IMG/VR virus record: IMGVR_UViG_3300032334_002567
Span: 248,001 to 312,000 of that record
DNA: 64,000 bases
Direction: 5' to 3' (one strand)
A program made the position numbers and the translations under genes. Position 1 is the first letter of the stretch, and the number at the start of each line of letters is the position of its first letter. Shown piece by piece: positions 9,028 through 45,907 of the stretch. The notes below the pieces were generated by a model that had not been told where the DNA came from, did no database searches, and was given only the letters and a program-made list of their open reading frames with translations.

Positions 9028-10110
9028 ATGCGAATATACCTCAATAACATAGGCGGCAAAAGACTCGTTAGAAGAGCTAATGATAAGAATTATTTAAAGG
9101 CAGTAGTCGCATACTTTGATAATTTCACAACACAATGGACAGCTTTAGGTCTTACGGGACTCGGTAGCGTTGTATCGAAAGTCACCAAAGCTCAACCCGG
9201 TTACGGTCAATATAGCGGCAACATTGCTGGTTTGGGTGCAAAAGTCATGGTTAATGGAACCATTCACATTAATGGAACTATGTACTCAGACGATGAAATT
9301 AATATTTACAAAAATGAAACCATAGTATACGCAACTGGCAGCAGTAGCGGTACTGATTTTACATTTAATGATGTTACATTTTCTGTAATTTATGGAGACA
9401 CTATAAGATTTGGCATACAGCCTCTGCCAGGCTTTGGTGGTGATTATTATGGCACTACTGGTGGCAGTAATGCACCTCTTAGTATTTGGATAGTACCATC
9501 GGGTCCAACACCAACTCCAACACCTGCACCAACATCAACACCAACTCCAACTCCTGGCCCAACTAATACTCCAACCAATACACCAATACCCCCAACTGAT
9601 ACACCAACACCTGGCCCAACTGATACACCAACACCTGTGCCTCCAACTCCAACTCCTGGCCCAACAAATACTCCCACATTAACACCAACTGCTACGCCAA
9701 CACCTGGCCCAGCACCATTTAATAATTTTAATTCTACTTGGAACGCTGTTGGATTTACTGGTTCTGGATCGTCAGGAGACCCATATACGAGAACTTATGC
9801 TCAATACTCCGGCGATATTGGAGGAGCACAGTTTACTGTTATATCTACCGGTACTCTACGCATAACCGGCTTAGTGGGAGAAGATTTTGGTGTAAATATA
9901 TATAAGCAAACTAACGGCGTTGGATCCTTTACTTCTATCTCTTCGTCCGGCGATAATTGGAGTGGCGGCGGTGGTTACTACATTCTTGACTTAACTCTCA
10001 GCGTTTCGGCTAATGACGTTATTCAACTAGATGATACCGGTAATGGATTTAGTATCTGGGGCGGCGGCTTAGGTCAGCCTGCTGGAGCACTTAACATTTG
10101 GTGGCAGTAG
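9028..10110 (+). CDS. Pro/Thr-linker protein with two related beta-rich domains (virion appendage-like)
   Basis: central PTPTP repeat; both flanking domains share FN/F..W.A.G.TG.GS and YSG.I.G segments. Confidence 0.6.
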
Positions 10111-13065: not shown

Positions 13066-13911
13066 TTATCTTTTGTTCTTTCTTGTTGATCTGTATTTAT
13101 TGTTTTTTGCTATGATGCTATATGGCTTTTTCTCAATTTTCTCAATTTTTTCTATAGTTTTTGCTTTTTTATTCTTAACTTTATCTATAGTCGTTATTTT
13201 CTTATATTCCTCTGCGTTTATTAATACCTTATCATTTAAACCATTCTTCAATAGGTTTTTCATAAAGTCTTGTCTATAAATTTCAGATCTACCGCACAAA
13301 TGAACAAACAGAGCATCCTGTATAGGGTAGAAACGTTCTAAACAATTTAGGACATATGGTTTGTGTATAATAATTCTATCTAAATTATTAGGTATAATTT
13401 TCTCAACCATCACCCTTTGCTCATATGGGAATATTCTCCACATTTTATCATTGCGTAGATCCCAGATATCTGACTCAATTTTAATTGCTGCCTTGCTTAC
13501 AAATTTGACTCCTGTATTAACTTTGTTTTCTGTTTTTATTTTATATTTGAAGTCCCACACAGAAGGATAATCTTTTTCTGGCTTTTCATAAAACAAATGA
13601 TATAGTATATTATTATCTGATAAATCAATCGTTTCTTCTATTCTAAGGTTCATGCGATTCGCAAAGATGTCAGTATCAAGCCATACAAACCATTTCGCAT
13701 TAGGAAATCTTAGTGATGCTCTTTTTAGTATTTCACACCTTCTATAGTGTAATTGATGAACCTCTTTTTCAATCGGTTCTAACTCATCATAATAAAAATC
13801 ATAATCGTTTAAAGAGCAATAATGATCAATGGTTTTACGAGTGTTAACTGCAAACTCCACATCAAGCGGCCAATGACCACTAACTAATACAATATCACCT
13901 TTTTTATACAT
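13066..13911 (-). CDS. glycosyltransferase, GT34 (GMA12/MNN10)-like
   Basis: YC..NDY.F, WFVWLDTD (DxD), NTGV, YEQ, FVHLCG. Confidence 0.8.
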   Translation of the reverse strand: MYKKGDIVLVSGHWPLDVEFAVNTRKTIDHYCSLNDYDFYYDELEPIEKEVHQLHYRRCEILKRASLRFPNAKWFVWLDTDIFANRMNLRIEETIDLSDNNILYHLFYEKPEKDYPSVWDFKYKIKTENKVNTGVKFVSKAAIKIESDIWDLRNDKMWRIFPYEQRVMVEKIIPNNLDRIIIHKPYVLNCLERFYPIQDALFVHLCGRSEIYRQDFMKNLLKNGLNDKVLINAEEYKKITTIDKVKNKKAKTIEKIEKIEKKPYSIIAKNNKYRSTRKNKR

Positions 13912-24325: not shown

Positions 24326-24353
24326 TTGACATTTTGATTGTACCCTATAGACT
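24326..24353 (+). promoter_or_regulatory. sigma70-type promoter with TTGTACCCTA inside the spacer
   Basis: TTGACA-16 bp-TAGACT upstream of the ruvB-like gene and array 1. Confidence 0.65.
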
Positions 24354-24379: not shown

Positions 24380-25465
24380 ATGATTCCACAGGGTGAGTTG
24401 ATTTTCTGGGGGCCGAAGCATGAGGACAATCTTCCTATGCCTAGTAGGGAGGATAGGTTGAAGCGGGTGGACTCTGGCAATCCTTCTAGTCCGTTTAGCC
24501 GGTTCGTTGGTAATGAGCGGGCTGTTCGGAAGATGCAGGCTGCTGTGTATAGTGCGTTGGGCCGTCCGAATCATATCCAGCGTGATTTGGCGTTTGCCAT
24601 CTTTGGGCCTGCGTCTAGTGGCAAGACTACTTTGGCTCGGCTTTATGCTGATTCTGTAGAGTTGCCGTTGGTGGAGGTTAGTCCCAAGAGTATTCGGACT
24701 ACGGATGATCTTTTGGAGTTCATTCGTGCGACTTTGCTGGAGACAGAGGTTCCGTTGGTGGATTGTGGTACGGATCAGTTTGTGTTGCCTCCGATGGTGG
24801 TGTTTATTGACGAGGTTCATGCACTGAGTCGTTCGGTGGTGGATGGTCTGTTGAAGGCTACGGAATATAAGGATGCCATTCTTGTGACGGACGGTGGTTC
24901 AACCGTTGACTGTCATAACGTGACATGGATGATTGCGACAACGGATGAGGGTCGGTTGTTTGATGCGTTCCGTACTCGTTTTAGCCCGATTATGTTGCAG
25001 TATTTGACTAAGGCCGAAGTGGCGAAGATTGTTAGCATGGCTCATAAGGATTTGCCTTCTGAGGTGTGTATGTTGGTGGCTCACTATAACAGTCGGATTC
25101 CCCGTAAGGCTTTGGAGTTTGCTAGGTACATGAAGATGGTTCGTGATATGCACCCTGAGATGACTTGGGAGGACGTTGCCCGTCAGGTTGCTGGTGATGA
25201 GGGGATTGACGAGTATGGGATGCAGGAGCTTCATTTGAAGGTCTTGCGGGCTTTGGGTCAGGGGCCGGTTGCTCGTAATCGTATAAGTTTGGTTGTGGGC
25301 AGGAAGATTGAGGAAGTGGAGCGGTACATCATGCCGTGGCTGTTGAGTGAGACAGAGGATCAGCCTGCGATGGTTACTGTGTCGAGCAAGGGCTATGTGA
25401 TTACTAGGGCTGGGCTTGACGAATTGGAGAAACGTGGTATAAGCTATGTGGCTGAAGCTGCGTGA
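24380..25465 (+). CDS. ruvB: RuvB-like Holliday junction branch migration AAA+ ATPase
   Basis: F..FVGN, GPASSGKTTLA (Walker A), FIDEVHAL (Walker B), ATT..G.L..AFRTRF, PR.A, GID..G...GP...E.Y..P.L C-terminal winged helix; AGGAGG RBS before ATG 24380. Confidence 0.8.
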   Translation: MIPQGELIFWGPKHEDNLPMPSREDRLKRVDSGNPSSPFSRFVGNERAVRKMQAAVYSALGRPNHIQRDLAFAIFGPASSGKTTLARLYADSVELPLVEVSPKSIRTTDDLLEFIRATLLETEVPLVDCGTDQFVLPPMVVFIDEVHALSRSVVDGLLKATEYKDAILVTDGGSTVDCHNVTWMIATTDEGRLFDAFRTRFSPIMLQYLTKAEVAKIVSMAHKDLPSEVCMLVAHYNSRIPRKALEFARYMKMVRDMHPEMTWEDVARQVAGDEGIDEYGMQELHLKVLRALGQGPVARNRISLVVGRKIEEVERYIMPWLLSETEDQPAMVTVSSKGYVITRAGLDELEKRGISYVAEAA

Positions 25466-26198
25466 ACCAATAAGTTCGATTTTGCACACTGAAGAAGTGA
25501 ACCACTTCCATAGATTTAGCAAGTTCTGTGAGTGAACCACTATAGGGAATTTTACACAAAGCCGTAGTGAACCTTGGATGATGATTTTATATTCGCACTG
25601 AGTGAACCATTAGAAGAGATTTTACATGCCCCACGAGTGAACCATTGAAGCCGATTTTACATGATGAAATAGTGAACCACGGTTTAGGATTTTACATTTT
25701 GACAGAGTGAACCAGCCTCGAAGATTTTACACTGAAGTTGAGTGAACCAGGGACCGGGATTTTACATGGGATCCACAGTGAACCAAGTGGTACGATCTTA
25801 CAGTCAAGAAGAGTGAACCATCAAAAGCAATTTTATAGCGACGTTGAGTGAACCAGACTTTCGGATTTTACATCACGACCGAGTGAACCATATCCGCTGA
25901 TTTAAATAACGGAAAAGAGTGAATCACGCAATACGATTTTTAACACAACGCCCGAGTGAACCAAGAAAACGGATTTCAACATAATCCGATAGTGAACCAT
26001 TGGGCATTTTTTTGCAATGAGAGCGAGTGAACCAAATAGATCGATTTTACATACCGTGCGAGTGAACCAGGGGAGAAGATTTTATAGGTTTGGAGAGTGA
26101 ACCGTGTAGATCGATTTAGCATACAGTTCGAGTGAACCAATTCTTCAGATTTTACATGATGAGTAAGTGAACCATAAATTTGATTTAGCATAAAGGAA
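25460..26198 (+). ncRNA. TIGR-like dual-repeat guide RNA array 1 (about 21 units of 35 nt)
   Basis: alternating (G)AGTGAACCA and GATTTTACA repeats separated by unique 8-nt spacers; edge repeats at 25460, 25495, 25530 ... 26130, 26165. Confidence 0.88.
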
Positions 26199-26209
26199 TT
26201 GTACCCTAT

Positions 26210-26539
26210 ATGGATGCTCGGGTAGCTTTGCATACCATGATGTTGGCACTTGGGCGTGAAGGAGCGACTCCGATGGTCAGGATGGAGTCTGGGTACAGTA
26301 TCAAGAACAACAAGTTCCTAAAAAGATTAAAGAAAAAGTTTAAGAGGCACGGGCCGTGCAGGGTTCCAGAATATGAAGATTATTTTCTTCTAAGTTCGGA
26401 ACCTTATTTTGTTTATAAATATGCGGAGATTATTGGTGCAAACAAAATGCCTGAGCCTTTGCATCGAAAGATGTTAAGTTTTGCTATTATGAATCCGAAT
26501 AATTATTATGTGAAGCGTTATTTAAGTCAAAGGAGTTGA
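26210..26539 (+). CDS. phage helical-repeat family protein
   Basis: C-terminal YA......MPE.LHRKML......NNYYVK.Y shared with paralogs. Confidence 0.6.
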   Translation: MDARVALHTMMLALGREGATPMVRMESGYSIKNNKFLKRLKKKFKRHGPCRVPEYEDYFLLSSEPYFVYKYAEIIGANKMPEPLHRKMLSFAIMNPNNYYVKRYLSQRS

Positions 26540-26543
26540 GAAG

Positions 26544-27377
26544 ATGCCTTACCAGCAAAGATTTTTGGTTTTGGATGGCAGCGAAACTTTTAATTATAAT
26601 AGGGCTTCTTCTGATGTTAAGAGTAAACAACCAGCGGCTAAGTTTTGTCCCATTCTTCTGAGTGTTCCAGATAATATCTTCTCAAATTGTAAAAACATTG
26701 AGGATCGTCTTGAAGATTGGGTGAAGAAGGTTTACGCCCAAAAGAATGAATTGCAGCTTTGGTCTGGACATATGTTGGTTGTAATGACAGAGGAGCAGTG
26801 TAGTTCTAATCATCAGATGAATCTTGTATTTAATAGTTATAATTGGAATAATGTTTTACCTTCTTGGCTGAATGTTCCTACTGATGCTACTACAGCAATT
26901 ACATTTGTTAAGGATGTTGGCGTTAATCTTCCTGAGTTTGAGCCTGTAATTAGTCAAGAATCAAAGACAAGTTACGAGTACGCTATTATCTTGAGGAAGA
27001 GATTTGAGATGGGAGAACCGGCTATTGCTAAGGATGCTGGTTTGAGTTGTCGTTATGCTAAGGAAATTATTGGTGGTAGGTTTTTGCTTGGAGAGCCTAC
27101 TATTGCCCAGCATGAACGTGCTGCTGACTTGTATGCTGAGAAGATCAGGGAGTGGCGTTTGTGGGGAGAGTTCAGTCATGAAACCCTGATGACGAGTCCG
27201 GTTTGGATGTATCATTATGCCAAGGATTTTTGTGGAGGTCGTTTGCCTGAGAATCTCCATAATCGGATGTTGATGATGAGTGTGATGGAACCGAATAATT
27301 ATTGGGTGAAGCGGTATAGTGCCAAGAAGTATCAGAAGAAGAAGCGGGCGCCAAAAGCTAATTTAGAAAATGCTTGA
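26544..27377 (+). CDS. phage helical-repeat family protein
   Basis: YA..I...RF..GEP.IA repeats; GRLPENLHNRML...NYWVK. Confidence 0.75.
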   Translation: MPYQQRFLVLDGSETFNYNRASSDVKSKQPAAKFCPILLSVPDNIFSNCKNIEDRLEDWVKKVYAQKNELQLWSGHMLVVMTEEQCSSNHQMNLVFNSYNWNNVLPSWLNVPTDATTAITFVKDVGVNLPEFEPVISQESKTSYEYAIILRKRFEMGEPAIAKDAGLSCRYAKEIIGGRFLLGEPTIAQHERAADLYAEKIREWRLWGEFSHETLMTSPVWMYHYAKDFCGGRLPENLHNRMLMMSVMEPNNYWVKRYSAKKYQKKKRAPKANLENA

Positions 27378-27401
27378 CAAGTCTATTATCTGTGGTATAA
27401 T
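27374..27401 (+). promoter_or_regulatory. strong sigma70-type promoter of array 2
   Basis: TTGACA-16 bp-TATAAT with extended TGn. Confidence 0.85.
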
Positions 27402-27407
27402 GGTTTT

Positions 27408-27555
27408 AACCAAGGTAGTCGATTTTTTAAGTTCAAATAGTGAACCATATTGCCGGATTTTATATCAGGCTGAAGTGAACCATAGCAAAGGATTTTGCAT
27501 CGGCTGAAGAGTGAACCATCGCCCAGTGATTTCAACAAGATCAACAAGTGAATCA
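27408..27555 (+). ncRNA. TIGR-like array 2 (about 4 units)
   Basis: AACCA-aggtagtc-GATTTTTTA-agttcaaa-TAGTGAACCA-tattgccg-GATTTTATA-tcaggctg-AAGTGAACCA-tagcaaag-GATTTTGCA-tcggctgaa-GAGTGAACCA-tcgcccagt-GATTTCAACA-agatcaac-AAGTGAATCA. Confidence 0.85.
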
Positions 27556-28085
27556 TGAATCTGAAGTTTGGCATTAAACCGAGTGACGACGATTGGACGG
27601 CAGAAAAAGAGCTTTCTTATAAAGCTGCTAAGGCTGCTTTTCAAAAGTTTTTTAATGGTGAAAAATTAAGTCGTGAATTAGAGAAGATTATTGCGTCAGA
27701 CGCTACTTGGAGCTGTCAGTATGCTGCTGCATTAAAGGATAGGTTTATACTGGGCGAACCTATTATTGCTTCTAAAGCGAGAACAGCAGGTTGGTATGCT
27801 CGTCATATTATCCGGGGTCCGTGGCCTGAAGGCGAGTCTGGAATATCCCAAAGTGCATATTTCGTATGTGCATATATTTGTGATGTTTTAAACGGGAGCA
27901 GGGTATCTGATTTAATTCACAGAAATATGTTGGCTTTGCTTATAGAAAACCCATCAGATTATTGGGTGCTTGAATATATGCACTATAGAGAATGGCTTGA
28001 TGGTCACGTTGCAGAGCCTAGTTGGGTTCGTCAGGGAAATTGGAATTATGGCGGGGTTACGCAAGAATATTTAAATTCGAATTAG
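27555..28085 (+). CDS. phage helical-repeat family protein
   Basis: YA..L..RF.LGEP.IA, YA..II.GPWPEGE, IHRNML...DYWV. Confidence 0.75.
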   Translation: MNLKFGIKPSDDDWTAEKELSYKAAKAAFQKFFNGEKLSRELEKIIASDATWSCQYAAALKDRFILGEPIIASKARTAGWYARHIIRGPWPEGESGISQSAYFVCAYICDVLNGSRVSDLIHRNMLALLIENPSDYWVLEYMHYREWLDGHVAEPSWVRQGNWNYGGVTQEYLNSN

Positions 28086-28130: not shown

Positions 28131-28850
28131 ATGGACATTCTCACTGATAATTGGGTTCAAGTATTCCCTAATATGCTGCATTATGCTTCTAGGACTGGTG
28201 GGCGGGTTCCTGAATTTGAGCCGCTGTTTATTCAGGATGCTGATGCTGCTTCTAGCTATGCAGCTGGATCTATTCATGGGCGTTGGCCAGAAGCAGAAGA
28301 AATTATAGCTACTAATTCTGGTGCTGCTCTTAATTATGCCCGTAAAGTAATTGCGGGTAAGTGGGAACCCGGAGAGGCTGCTATTGCTACTAATCCTAAA
28401 GATAGCTACTGGTATGCCACTTATGTTCTCAAAGGCAGCTTCCCAGAAGGCGAAGCGGAAATTGCTAAACATCCTGACCTTAGTTTTGATTATGCAAGAA
28501 ATGTGATTTATGGTCGGTTTATTGCTGGTGAAGCTGAGATTGGCAAGTTAGAAGTCACTGGCTTTAATCCCAAGATGGCTTTAGATTATATGAATCTTTG
28601 GGTGAAGGGTAATTGGTCGGGTTGGACTGAAGATCAGATTCGTGTGTGTCCTTGTTGGCTGTATAACTATGCCAAGCAGCATTGTAAGGGTAGGCTTCCA
28701 GATAATCTTCATAATGCTATGCTGACATTTGGCATGACAATTAATGAGAATTATTGGGTGAAGAAGTATTTTAAGGCTGCGAAGTACCAGAAGAAGATTA
28801 AGCGGCGCAATCCACCGGAGATGGCTGCTCCTATTGTTATCCCTGATTAA
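28131..28850 (+). CDS. phage helical-repeat family protein
   Basis: four ~23-aa YA..V..G.W.E.E..IA repeats; GRLPDNLHNAML...NYWVK. Confidence 0.8.
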   Translation: MDILTDNWVQVFPNMLHYASRTGGRVPEFEPLFIQDADAASSYAAGSIHGRWPEAEEIIATNSGAALNYARKVIAGKWEPGEAAIATNPKDSYWYATYVLKGSFPEGEAEIAKHPDLSFDYARNVIYGRFIAGEAEIGKLEVTGFNPKMALDYMNLWVKGNWSGWTEDQIRVCPCWLYNYAKQHCKGRLPDNLHNAMLTFGMTINENYWVKKYFKAAKYQKKIKRRNPPEMAAPIVIPD

Positions 28851-29046: not shown

Positions 29047-29539
29047 AAAAGTTATTTTTGATAATGACGAACATTCTATAACGGTTAAACCCGTTACGTT
29101 AATTTTCAATAATACTTATGGGGAGAGTGTATATCCTGAACGGGTAATGATTGATTCAAATATGACTTTGGATCATTTTAAAACCCTAAAGGAGATTGAT
29201 CCTTATACGGCTGCTTTTTTTAAATTTGTTGTGGATGATTATCCTCATCCTGTGATGAAGAGTTTTCTTGAGAAGTCGGCAATTGGATGTCGTCATTTAA
29301 TTGGATTGTTTTCTTTGAGCTTGGAGCTGCTGAGTCAACAGAAAAAGTTCGGTTGGAAGTATCCAGAGGCTAATCTTCATCCTAGACAACAGTTAAATTT
29401 AGCAGATGCTTTGATTGTTTTTGGGCAACCAGAGCGATTTGTTAAATTGGTGAAATATGTGCAAGCTGGGTTCTTTGACCAGTATCAAATGTGTGCAAAA
29501 GAATCTTGGCGTGATGAAGCGTTCAGGGTGATGTCTTGA
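29036..29539 (+). CDS. hypothetical protein
   Basis: 167-aa ORF, GGAG RBS. Confidence 0.65.
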   Translation: METEKVIFDNDEHSITVKPVTLIFNNTYGESVYPERVMIDSNMTLDHFKTLKEIDPYTAAFFKFVVDDYPHPVMKSFLEKSAIGCRHLIGLFSLSLELLSQQKKFGWKYPEANLHPRQQLNLADALIVFGQPERFVKLVKYVQAGFFDQYQMCAKESWRDEAFRVMS

Positions 29540-29563
29540 CATTAGTGTTTTCTGTGGTATACT
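29536..29563 (+). promoter_or_regulatory. sigma70-type promoter of the putative sRNA
   Basis: TTGACA-16 bp-TATACT with extended TGn. Confidence 0.8.
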
Positions 29564-29569
29564 GATCGG

Positions 29570-29766
29570 GCCGATCAAAACTTACCGTGCTTGTGCTGCT
29601 ATGGCATCCAGCAGAAACGGTGACTCAGCGGAAGGTAGTCGGCTGATCTGCCCGTAAGACTCCGGGCAGTTAGCTAAACGTCCGCAGTTCATAACACATT
29701 CACCCTCCGTCCTTTCTAATGTGTGTATGAATAGGTCTGCCTCCTCAAAAGAGGCAGACTTTTTTT
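29570..29766 (+). ncRNA. putative ~200-nt structured small RNA
   Basis: lies between a promoter and an intrinsic terminator, no convincing ORF; helices ACCGT/ACGGT, CTGCT/AGCAG, GCGGA/TCCGC, CTGCCCG/CGGGCAG, TTCATAACACATT/AATGTGTGTATGAA. Confidence 0.7.
29735..29766 (+). terminator. intrinsic terminator
   Basis: GTCTGCCTC-ctcaaaa-GAGGCAGAC followed by T7. Confidence 0.85.
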
Positions 29767-29809
29767 GTACCCTATAGTTTTGTGTTCTCAACTTTTTAGG
29801 AGCTAAACC

Positions 29810-29965
29810 ATGGCTAAGGATGATAAGCCCCAGTTCGATCCTGATAGTGATGATGAGTATGACTATCTCAAGGAGAATTGGGAACCGGGTGATGAGCCTA
29901 TGAATGATCGTCAGCGTCGTGAAAATGAACAGTTGGATGAAGAGTACCGTCGTAACAAGTTTTAA
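29810..29965 (+). CDS. small acidic protein (51 aa)
   Basis: AGGAG RBS; MAKDDKPQFDPDSDDEYDYLKENWEPGDEPMNDRQRRENEQLDEEYRRNKF; below the ORF-track cutoff. Confidence 0.65.
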   Translation: MAKDDKPQFDPDSDDEYDYLKENWEPGDEPMNDRQRRENEQLDEEYRRNKF

Positions 29966-29986: not shown

Positions 29987-30898
29987 ATGGGTAAGGCTAA
30001 GAAGGCGACTTTAAGTGAAGATGCAATTGAAGTTTTGAGTGGTCTTGGGGAGATTACTCGACTTGATAAAGATTTGAAAAAGCTAATTCGAACTTTGAAT
30101 CGTGATGAGGTTCGGTGCATTGTGAACTATTATTACAATGTGCAGGAGAACCGGATGAGGTCTTCTAAGCAGATTGATGCTGCCAGTAAGGCTGGTACTC
30201 CGCATGATCTGATGGTTTATCTGAATGCCCAAACTCAAGTTTTGGAAAATCAGATTGCTAAGGCTATGGATGAGTGGACTGAGGGGCATCCTGTAGCTAA
30301 GGCTTTGAAGGACAATGTTTATGGTATTGGCCCGATTATTTCAGCGGGTCTGGTTGCTCATTTTGATATTCGTCGGGCTGCTACTGCTGGTGCATTCTGG
30401 CGATATGCTGGTCTTGACCCCACATCTGAGTGGAACAAGGGTGAGAAGCGGCCTTGGAATGCAGCTTTGAAAACTTTGTGTTGGAAGGTCGGCCAGAGTT
30501 TCATGAAGTTCTCTAATGCTACTGATAAAGATACCGGGGCAGCTAAGTGCTTTTACGGTGATCTTTATCGTCAGAAGAAGGCTGAATTGGTTGCTAAGAA
30601 TCAGGGTGGTGGATTTAAGGGTCTGGCGGATAGTGTGTTGAAGGCTAAGAAGTTTCGTGATGTCGCAACTAAAGCAAAATATGAATCAGGGATGCTTCCT
30701 GATGGTCATATTGATGCTATGGCTCGTCGCTGGGCTGTGAAGCTGTTTCTGAGTAATCTGCATGAACTTTGGTGTGCAGCAGAGGGAATTCCGTGTCCTC
30801 GGCCTTATTCGATGGCGATTCAGGGCCATGCTCATTACATCATGCAGCCTGAACTGGCTGATTTGATTAATGTTTGGAAGAATGAAGCTAGGATTTAA
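29987..30898 (+). CDS. TasA-like Nop-domain RNA-binding protein (IS110/IS116 C-terminal fold, no nuclease domain)
   Basis: coiled-coil then YGIGPIISAGLVAHFDI.R..T.GAFWRYAGLDP...G.K..WN..LK..C, Y..LY...K, H....A.R.AVKLFL..L...W; no DEDD RuvC or HNH; dual-repeat arrays nearby. Confidence 0.82.
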   Translation: MGKAKKATLSEDAIEVLSGLGEITRLDKDLKKLIRTLNRDEVRCIVNYYYNVQENRMRSSKQIDAASKAGTPHDLMVYLNAQTQVLENQIAKAMDEWTEGHPVAKALKDNVYGIGPIISAGLVAHFDIRRAATAGAFWRYAGLDPTSEWNKGEKRPWNAALKTLCWKVGQSFMKFSNATDKDTGAAKCFYGDLYRQKKAELVAKNQGGGFKGLADSVLKAKKFRDVATKAKYESGMLPDGHIDAMARRWAVKLFLSNLHELWCAAEGIPCPRPYSMAIQGHAHYIMQPELADLINVWKNEARI

Positions 30899-31118: not shown

Positions 31119-31213
31119 TTGACGTAAGTTCTTTTGAATAAAGAACTTACGTCAACAGACTTTTTGCCATTTGACGTAAGTGCAGTCTAACAAACGACTT
31201 ACGTCAAATGGCT
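31119..31213. repeat. two tandem inverted repeats with TTGACGTAAGT/ACTTACGTCAA arms
   Basis: TTGACGTAAGTTCTTT-tgaat-AAAGAACTTACGTCAA and GCCATTTGACGTAAGT...ACTTACGTCAAATGGC. Confidence 0.85.
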
Positions 31214-31397
31214 GAAGTTTTGTGTTCGAGGTGATTTGTCATTGTTTTTTTACACCCAGGGCGATGGTATTTGTCATTGTTTTATGAACCCAATAATTTT
31301 TGGGTCGGTCTAATTTTAAAATAGATTGTGGTATACTTAGGGTCACATAAAAAAATTGTACCCTATGAATTTGTTGTCTACTTAAAAGGGAAAAAAG

Positions 31398-45638: not shown

Positions 45639-45907
45639 GGAAGCGTAGCTCAGTTGGTAGAGCATCGGACTTCAAATAGGAGTGCTTATCGGGAAACTGA
45701 TAAAGTAGAACTGCTCAAATTCGGTGAACGCTTAACTGCCAATACCGAGCCAAGCCTAGAAATAGGAAGGTGTAGAGACTTGACGGGCAGCACCTAAAGT
45801 TGAAAAACAATGGTGAAGGTAAAGTCCAGACCACAAACAGAAATGGTAACGAAAGTTATAGTGGTAAGTTAATCCGTTGGTCCTGGGTTCGAGTCCCAGC
45901 GCTTCCA
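45639..45907 (+). tRNA. tRNA-Lys(UUU) interrupted by a group I intron (exons 45639-45672 and 45869-45907)
   Basis: GGAAGCG/CGCTTCC acceptor; spliced loop CT-TTT-AA; T arm CTGGG-TTCGAGT-CCCAG. Confidence 0.85.
45673..45868 (+). ncRNA. self-splicing group I intron (IC3-like), 196 nt, no ORF
   Basis: P1 ACTTC/GGAGT with U.G at the 5' splice site; CAAATTCGGTGAA, ATACCGAGCCAAG, GTGTAGAGACTTGACGG and AAGGTAAAGTCC core elements; terminal G. Confidence 0.85.

Follow-up and report, generated by a model that had tools for sequence, protein, structure and literature searches.

Two IMG/VR contigs, one of 381 kb and the other of 146 kb, contain segments identical to the stretch of DNA analysed here (64 kb, hereafter the window), which is therefore from a jumbo phage. 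Megablast of the locus against GenBank phages returned no match, and these contigs are not listed in the Faure 2025 supplements consulted. Six tRNA genes (8157, 36552, 36840, 39661, 46124 and 62564) and a group I intron (45662–45849; Rfam, 52 bits) are consistent with a large lytic phage genome. Long tandem repeats of the ACACCAAC type are present at 1656–2625 (periods 39 and 87) and 9505–9711 (periods 18–45); they lie within large + strand ORFs and apparently encode Thr/Pro-rich linkers. The locus itself harbors two arrays of short repeats, assigned below to TIGR, tandem guide RNAs with two spacers that were first reported as a class in 2025 (Faure 2025), along with a tas gene and the following neighbors:

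24338..24348, + strand: promoter-like motif TTGTACCCTAT, 5′ of the RuvB-like ORF
24380..25465, + strand: RuvB-like AAA+ ORF (Pfam RuvB_N and AAA; PHROG clamp-loader match)
25460..26198, + strand: putative TIGR array 1, 21 units, the last one degenerate
26199..26209, + strand: promoter-like motif TTGTACCCTAT, immediately 3′ of array 1
27374..27401, + strand: predicted sigma-70-type promoter of array 2 (TTGACA, 16 nt, TATAAT; 12/12 matches, extended −10 TG), called purely from its match to the consensus
27438..27555, + strand: putative TIGR array 2, three full units closed by an edge-repeat variant AAGTGAATCA, repeats as in array 1
29987..30898, + strand: tas gene of TasA type (303 aa, coiled coil and Nop domain, no nuclease domain)

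Units of array 1 are composed, in this order, of an edge repeat (G)AGTGAACCA of 10 nt, spacer A of 8 nt, a loop repeat GATTTTACA of 9 nt and spacer B of 8 nt. The resulting dual-repeat sum (10 + 8 + 9 + 8 = 35 nt) is observed in 16 of 20 intervals and conforms to the dual-repeat TIGR format, in which distinct repeats of two kinds, 8–12 nt long, alternate with spacers of approximately 8–12 nt in a unit of approximately 36 nt. An earlier note on this DNA, made from the sequence, had listed 21 edge-repeat starts, all of which were recovered at exactly those coordinates; its strict 35-nt phase is better called near-strict, since three intervals measure 36 nt and one measures 37 nt. As the same note had proposed, information content was calculated per position, here over the sixteen 35-nt units, and it separates conserved repeats (edge positions 2–10, 1.2–1.9 bits; loop positions 19–27, 1.0–1.9 bits) from two 8-nt variable windows per unit that carry close to 0 bits (−0.1 to 0.3 bits in both). 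Edge position 1 is weakly conserved (0.54 bits) and loop position 1 carries 1.0 bit; the note had described the first base of each repeat as variable. Every spacer pair quoted in the note is found in the array, and so are the three longer loop variants (units 25881, 25917 and 25954). Length variation had been attributed mostly to the T-run of the loop: one extra T does occur there, but the variation is mainly an extra A (AACA for ACA). This AACA ending is the form used by related phages, and the GATTTTAACA loop form is ancestral-looking. Unit 25740 (36 nt) has an additional base at the boundary between loop and spacer B, and the degenerate last unit (26165) has a spacer A of 7 nt.

Edge and loop repeats share a GA start and a CA end, in agreement with the note, although the last three bases are CCA in the edge and ACA in the loop, and this lack of identity between the two boxes was counted against the TIGR reading. 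The arrangement is not due to chance: of the 20 exact AGTGAACCA copies in the 64 kb, 19 are inside the two arrays. Tandem Repeats Finder reports fragments only (25566–25731) because half of every unit varies. Translation of array 1 as a repeat protein, named in the note as an outcome that would speak against guides, is contradicted by 16–22 stops per + frame, with at most 46 open codons, and by a unit length of 35 nt that is not a multiple of three. Both arrays start with an edge repeat and array 2 also finishes with one, AAGTGAATCA, which overlaps the ATG of the ORF at 27555–28085. Array 1 finishes with its degenerate unit followed by TTGTACCC. No terminator-like site was found after array 1, which was also counted against the TIGR reading, and an Rfam search of the arrays gave no match.

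Both arrays would be transcribed from the + strand. The stop codon of the RuvB-like ORF (TGA, 25463–25465) falls within the first edge repeat of array 1, and the two are probably on a shared transcript. The TTGTACCCTAT copy at 24338..24348 is the probable start of a transcript running through array 1, and the copy at 26199 marks the next transcription unit; given these two positions and no terminator between them, array 1 is probably the 3′ tail of the RuvB-like transcript. The GT of the motif at 26199..26209 may stand in for a 3′-truncated terminal edge repeat. Array 2 is probably transcribed from its own sigma-70-type promoter, which lies approximately 37 nt 5′ of the array. Written as TTGTACCCTA(T/A), the promoter-like motif is found 44 times in the window (0.8 expected), with 42 copies on the + strand. 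Those copies span 23991–63412 (e.g. 24338, 26199, 28096, 29765, 31356, 31800 and 33597), and a single copy, on the minus strand at 13322, precedes 23991. Seven copies checked against ORF starts are each located 30–56 nt 5′ of an ATG. The motif looks like a promoter specific to this phage, possibly served by an RNA polymerase of the phage, and would mark out a large block of genes with the same orientation.

Four paralogous ORFs are interleaved with the two arrays (26210–26539, 26544–27377, 27555–28085 and 28131–28850). Internal repeats of GEPxIA type and an NYWVKRY motif at the C terminus are common to all four, and none has a Pfam or PHROG match. Their homologues are found 1–2 kb 5′ of tas in the related loci L003–L005 and are absent from other tas loci.

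The tas gene is located 3.8 kb 3′ of array 1 and 2.4 kb from array 2 (range over the arrays, 2.4–4.5 kb), and unrelated genes separate both arrays from it, a distance likewise counted against the TIGR reading. Its 303-aa product matches TasR (9mty, E 1e-11) and TasH (21kl and others, E 5e-10) in alignments that start at residue 85 or beyond. An AlphaFold2 model based on 11 homologues (pLDDT 81.8, pTM 0.80) is all helical, and the top 11 PDB matches returned by Foldseek are all TasR/TasH chains, followed by the IS621 recombinase. Since neither HNH nor RuvC has a Pfam match in the protein, no beta structure appears in the model and the TasR/TasH alignments begin only at residue 85 or beyond, we assign it to the nuclease-free TasA type. 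More than 3000 homologues exist in public databases, labelled hypothetical or transposase, and the PHROG family of the protein, which was counted with sequence and fold as identifying it as Tas, has the label "transposase". The properties of an IS110 transposon are not found: Pfam Transposase_20 is sub-threshold (19.9 bits against a cut-off of 21.3, residues 111–147) and the model has no N-terminal alpha/beta domain. Residues Y274, H281 and H283 are invariant in 11 of 11 homologues. Y274 and H281 align, with the same 7-residue spacing, to Y289 and H296 of SpTasH, residues shown to cut the pre-tigRNA (PMC13421893), and on the basis of this match the window TasA is expected to process its own pre-tigRNA.

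Other elements are found around the tas operon. A candidate small RNA (29536–29768; approximately 200 nt without an ORF) just 5′ of it is bracketed by a sigma-70-type promoter (TTGACA, 16 nt, TATACT) and a strong terminator (29733–29761), and folds at −72.3 kcal/mol (z = −3.9); it has no Rfam match and is not conserved in L003–L005. Sub-threshold Rfam matches to archaeal box C/D sRNAs at 29817–29863 (sR5, 19 bits against a cut-off of 40) fall within a small acidic ORF just 5′ of tas. The sR5 match is probably due to chance, from GATGATGA/CTGA-like sequence, even though it sits beside a Nop-domain gene. On the 3′ side of the operon, two near-identical long hairpins are present at 31119–31215 (TTGACGTAAG...CTTACGTCAA), the first of which scores as a terminator.

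Association between this type of array and tas is recurrent. All 15 non-identical IMG/VR loci that have a tas homologue (34–64% identity) carry adjoining dual-repeat arrays with 35–38-nt units. Most of them present two similar repeats of the form GAG.GA.CCA and 8-nt spacers; an AU-rich loop repeat sets the window and L003–L005 apart, as GATTTTAACA in the relatives and shortened to GATTTTACA in the window, and this shortening accounts for the 35-nt unit of the latter. The longer window units 25881–25954 are the carriers of the relatives' loop form. Three closer TasA relatives of metagenomic origin (P0002, P0016 and P0007, 58–69% identity) have no array within the 1–10 kb of flank available for them, so that array–tas proximity is not universal in the clade; this too was counted against the TIGR reading. 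In L017 (8852–10786), the tas homologue is a 644-aa ORF whose Tas-like segments are split by insertions of approximately 840 nt and 260 nt, which could be an intein or a domain insertion. The RuvB-like ATPase was considered as a conserved Tas partner and rejected, having no homologue in other tas loci.

The way the arrays are embedded in neighboring genes raises the possibility of a true TIGR array with a mainly cis role, in which Tas cuts edge repeats in mRNAs and DNA targeting is secondary. The RuvB-like stop codon, placed in the first edge repeat, speaks for this scenario, as does the overlap between the ATG of the ORF at 27555 and the last edge repeat of array 2, itself endowed with a strong predicted promoter; intragenic tigRNAs are reported in other systems (bioRxiv 10.64898/2026.09.09.750476). 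However, in L003–L005, the closest array-bearing relatives, the arrays are 3′ of tas and have neighbors that differ from those of the window, and 25 diverse spacer pairs are needless for cis cleavage. We regard as very improbable a primary cis role of this kind, in which the regulated genes would be the RuvB-like one, cut at its 3′ end, and ORF 27555, cut at its leader and start codon.

Among known systems, the nearest characterised relative of the arrays is SpTIGR-TasH from Salicola phage CGphi29 (structures 9w03, 9w04 and 21kl), a dual-repeat system that is phage-borne, like that of the window. In SpTIGR, 10-nt repeats of two kinds alternate, both following RAG.GA.CCA, with spacers of 8 nt, and the edge is 7/10 identical to the window edge. 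In that array AAGACAACCA alternates with AAGCGAGCCA up to a truncated AGCGAGCC and a terminator, which supports taking GAGTGAACCA as the edge repeat here; the window edge resembles the SpTIGR terminal repeat AAGCGAGCCA. Both proteins have the Tyr/His processing pair, and their Nop domains are 27% identical over 190 aa. SpTasH differs in having an N-terminal HNH nuclease that cuts DNA, whereas the window protein has no nuclease. The SpTIGR loop resembles the SpTIGR edge, whereas the 9-nt loop of the window, GAUUUUACA, is AU-rich and brings the unit to 35 nt rather than 36. The SpTIGR array is directly 3′ of tasH. It is described as having 16 variable nt, 8+8 (PMC12045711), and its 10-nt edge is of the same type as in the window, with a variable first base. 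The earlier note had left room for an effective spacer of 9 nt; the 8+8 description favours 8 nt.

Systems of TasA type (FpTasA, MbTasA and PlTasA) are nuclease-free solo coiled coil and Nop proteins, to which we liken the window protein by their published description, its own coiled coil and Nop architecture being predicted from the all-helical model. Their published function is RNA-guided DNA binding with transcriptional repression. PlTasA uses stem-loop tigRNAs and has no Tyr/His loop, whereas the window protein keeps that loop. TaTasR (9mty), the best PDB match in both sequence and fold, has repeats that start with box D and end with box C, paired together as in the window; it differs by its RuvC domain, 9-nt spacers and UG...CCA boxes.

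IS110/IS621 recombinases and archaeal box C/D sRNPs (Nop5) have the same RNA-binding fold (Foldseek ranks 12–16), and Pfam and PHROG label the Tas family as IS110-type transposase. Both have, as the window does, two guide segments flanked by box C/D-like motifs. The window system differs from these in its arrayed guides and in lacking a DEDD or RuvC catalytic domain, a single bridge RNA and any K-turn/L7Ae or fibrillarin partner. CRISPR arrays are likewise repeat–spacer arrays processed into guides, but the window has two alternating short repeats (9–10 nt, of two kinds) instead of one repeat of 25–40 nt, split 8+8-nt spacers that would read both DNA strands instead of spacers of approximately 30 nt, and neither cas genes nor a known adaptation module. 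A scan of ten flanking ORFs found no Cas-like Pfam match, and PADLOC run on four flanking ORFs returned only a weak IetA match, for the RuvB-like ATPase.

Constraint at the RNA level is visible within the repeats. Base 3 and the third-from-last base are G-C in 23 of 23 edge repeats of the window, counting one G-U, and in the loop repeats they are U-A in 16/23 and U-G in 4/23 (20/23); in the second repeat of L009, L011 and L012 the same positions are A-U, and across the loci G-C is the pair in nearly all repeats of edge type. This covariation supports an RNA pair, which is the box D/box C pair of the TasR structure, kept by compensatory change. The earlier note had envisaged two-spacer guide RNAs bound by a symmetric dimer through a pair of boxes, and this is the published TIGR-Tas architecture. 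A Tas gene nearby, arrays beside its homologues and the covarying box pair all support the guide-RNA reading, and we hold with high confidence that arrays 1 and 2 are a dual-repeat TIGR array of a jumbo phage with TasA, working by the mechanism proposed below. The TIGR-TasA kind has been known since 2025 and is catalogued in thousands of loci, to which this locus adds a new example.

As for that mechanism, we infer transcription, processing, dimer binding, target geometry and repression from published relatives. A coiled-coil dimer of TasA would bind, its two protomers sitting on the edge and the loop repeat respectively, and each reading the 5′ GA (box D) and 3′ CA (box C) common to both, with base 3 pairing with the third-from-last base as G-C in the edge and as U-A or U-G in the loop. 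The Tyr274/His281 loop would then cut within each edge repeat and release tigRNAs of approximately 35 nt. The two 8-nt spacers of a tigRNA are expected to pair with opposite strands, at adjacent halves of a 16-bp DNA site. By deduction, the top strand of the target would read spacer B and then the reverse complement of spacer A, the sole arrangement that gives the published 8-nt 3′ overhang under the C-5 rule. Given that TasA has no nuclease, the outcome would be RNA-guided DNA binding without cleavage, blocking transcription or replication of a host or rival-element target, and TasA proteins have been described as RNA-guided repressors (bioRxiv 10.64898/2026.09.09.750476).

The two arrays hold 25 guides, 22 of them in units that parse cleanly. 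Identity of the variable windows across related genomes had been put forward in the earlier note as an argument against guides, and only 3 of the 22 cleanly parsed guides recur in relatives. The variable windows are thus not fixed, most guides being confined to a single phage. The note had also suggested comparing arrays across phages for turnover and polarity. What we see suggests mosaic turnover rather than polar: L003 and L005 have flanks that are 96–99% identical, yet their arrays differ internally, by replacement of units and reshuffled half-units, and one spacer B is paired with differing spacer A sequences in the two. In L004, segmental duplications have left several units duplicated.

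Duplications of this sort (L004), the reshuffled half-units (L003 and L005) and the degenerate last unit of array 1 would also be expected from a functionless, decaying tandem duplication with windows that are mere drift. Drift, however, erodes all positions alike, whereas here the repeats retain 1.2–1.9 bits against approximately 0 bits in windows that hold an exact 8-nt length in almost all units. Guide pairs, moreover, survive between phages without detectable flank similarity. We therefore consider decay a most unlikely account of the arrays and retain the reading as guides.

Phages with a TasA of only 63% identity share three guides with the window, and in two of the three A and B are swapped; no nucleotide similarity was detected between the flanks of the guide-sharing phages and the window. 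Unit 25881 (TATCCGCT / ACGGAAAA) has an exact counterpart in L004. The guide of unit 27438 (TATTGCCG / TCAGGCTG) reappears in L003 and L005 with its two spacers in swapped order, each half carrying one change, and spacer B of unit 25954 occurs again in L004. One more swapped guide pair links L003 and L004. From 3100 cross-phage guide pairs, four swapped and one direct match were found at ≤2 mismatches, against none in 300 shuffles. Faure et al. (PMC12045711) showed experimentally that swapped spacers are equivalent, a swapped guide specifying the same double-stranded site, and the A/B-swapped guides fit the opposite-strand pairing rule. In the two swapped guide pairs, the differences are 9 and 3 nt apart under the ungapped arrangement of B followed by the reverse complement of A. 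Such spacing would fit third codon positions, but a 2-nt gap in the other geometry does just as well, so that the differences favour neither geometry. Recurrent guides look like they are kept for shared targets.

Searches for these targets found no natural target. When all 25 guides were compared with the 64-kb window in both geometries, with gaps of 0–2 and ≤3 mismatches, match counts equalled those of shuffled guides. The composite target of guide 27438 and its L003 variant returned 46 scattered exact matches in IMG/VR, without a common context and none in the phages' own contigs. For guide 25881, the composite target with gaps of 0–2 had 57 IMG/VR matches, close to chance as estimated from the hit rate of the guide 27438 scan. 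At gap 0 it matches one redundant group of approximately 35 kb phages; with a 2-bp gap, three independent matches (L112; L067; L089/L104/L117) fall in phage DNA methyltransferase genes, at the GK(K/Q)AD...(D/E)PPY region (GKKADM...TDPPY). The latter are not above background and are suggestive as a lead only; at the loci matched by guide 25881, other guides showed nothing beyond decoy level. Exact IMG/VR scans with the opposite target geometry likewise stayed at chance level. In L004, the shared guide's spacer A appears in reverse complement as spacer B of unit 10904, which prompted the idea of two guides tiled over one contiguous site. This tiling was rejected, scans for the predicted 24-mer and 20-mer being empty.

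Missing guide targets, both in the 64-kb window (all guides) and in IMG/VR (two conserved guides), count against the TIGR reading. They are compatible with the repeats being DNA-level protein-binding sites (iterons, centromere or origin-like) where a replication or partition protein of the phage would act, for instance the neighboring RuvB/clamp-loader-like ATPase, as are the regular 35-bp spacing and the AAA+ ATPase gene that array 1 abuts. That ATPase, however, is absent from all other loci with the same type of array, where a Tas homologue is always present. The box bases covary like an RNA pair, G-U included, a compensatory change that is hard to explain for a DNA-binding site, and the related SpTIGR array was experimentally shown to be processed into guide RNAs (PMC12045711). 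Binding sites of this kind are thus highly improbable, and TIGR arrays with TasA continue to be our reading.

With this locus the TIGR family gains a TasA system from a jumbo phage, its 25 guides divided between two arrays, and the picture of the TIGR mechanism is unchanged. Three aspects of it deserve attention: an unusual AU-rich loop repeat with compensatory change in the box pair, arrays probably embedded in transcripts of unrelated genes, and guide pairs conserved, sometimes swapped, between distant relatives. The conserved and swapped guides, the best lead from this locus, provide specific 16-bp sequences to seek in host genomes and allow the equivalence of spacers A and B to be examined on natural material. 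We tentatively propose, at somewhat less than an even chance, that selection keeps a subset of guides intact, each as a complete 16-bp double-stranded target unit, among jumbo phages otherwise diverged beyond nucleotide recognition. If true, the same few natural targets would be conserved among these phages, whether located in the host or in a rival element, and guides would be born or rebuilt in either orientation, giving a handle on the natural targets of TIGR systems and on how their arrays gain units.
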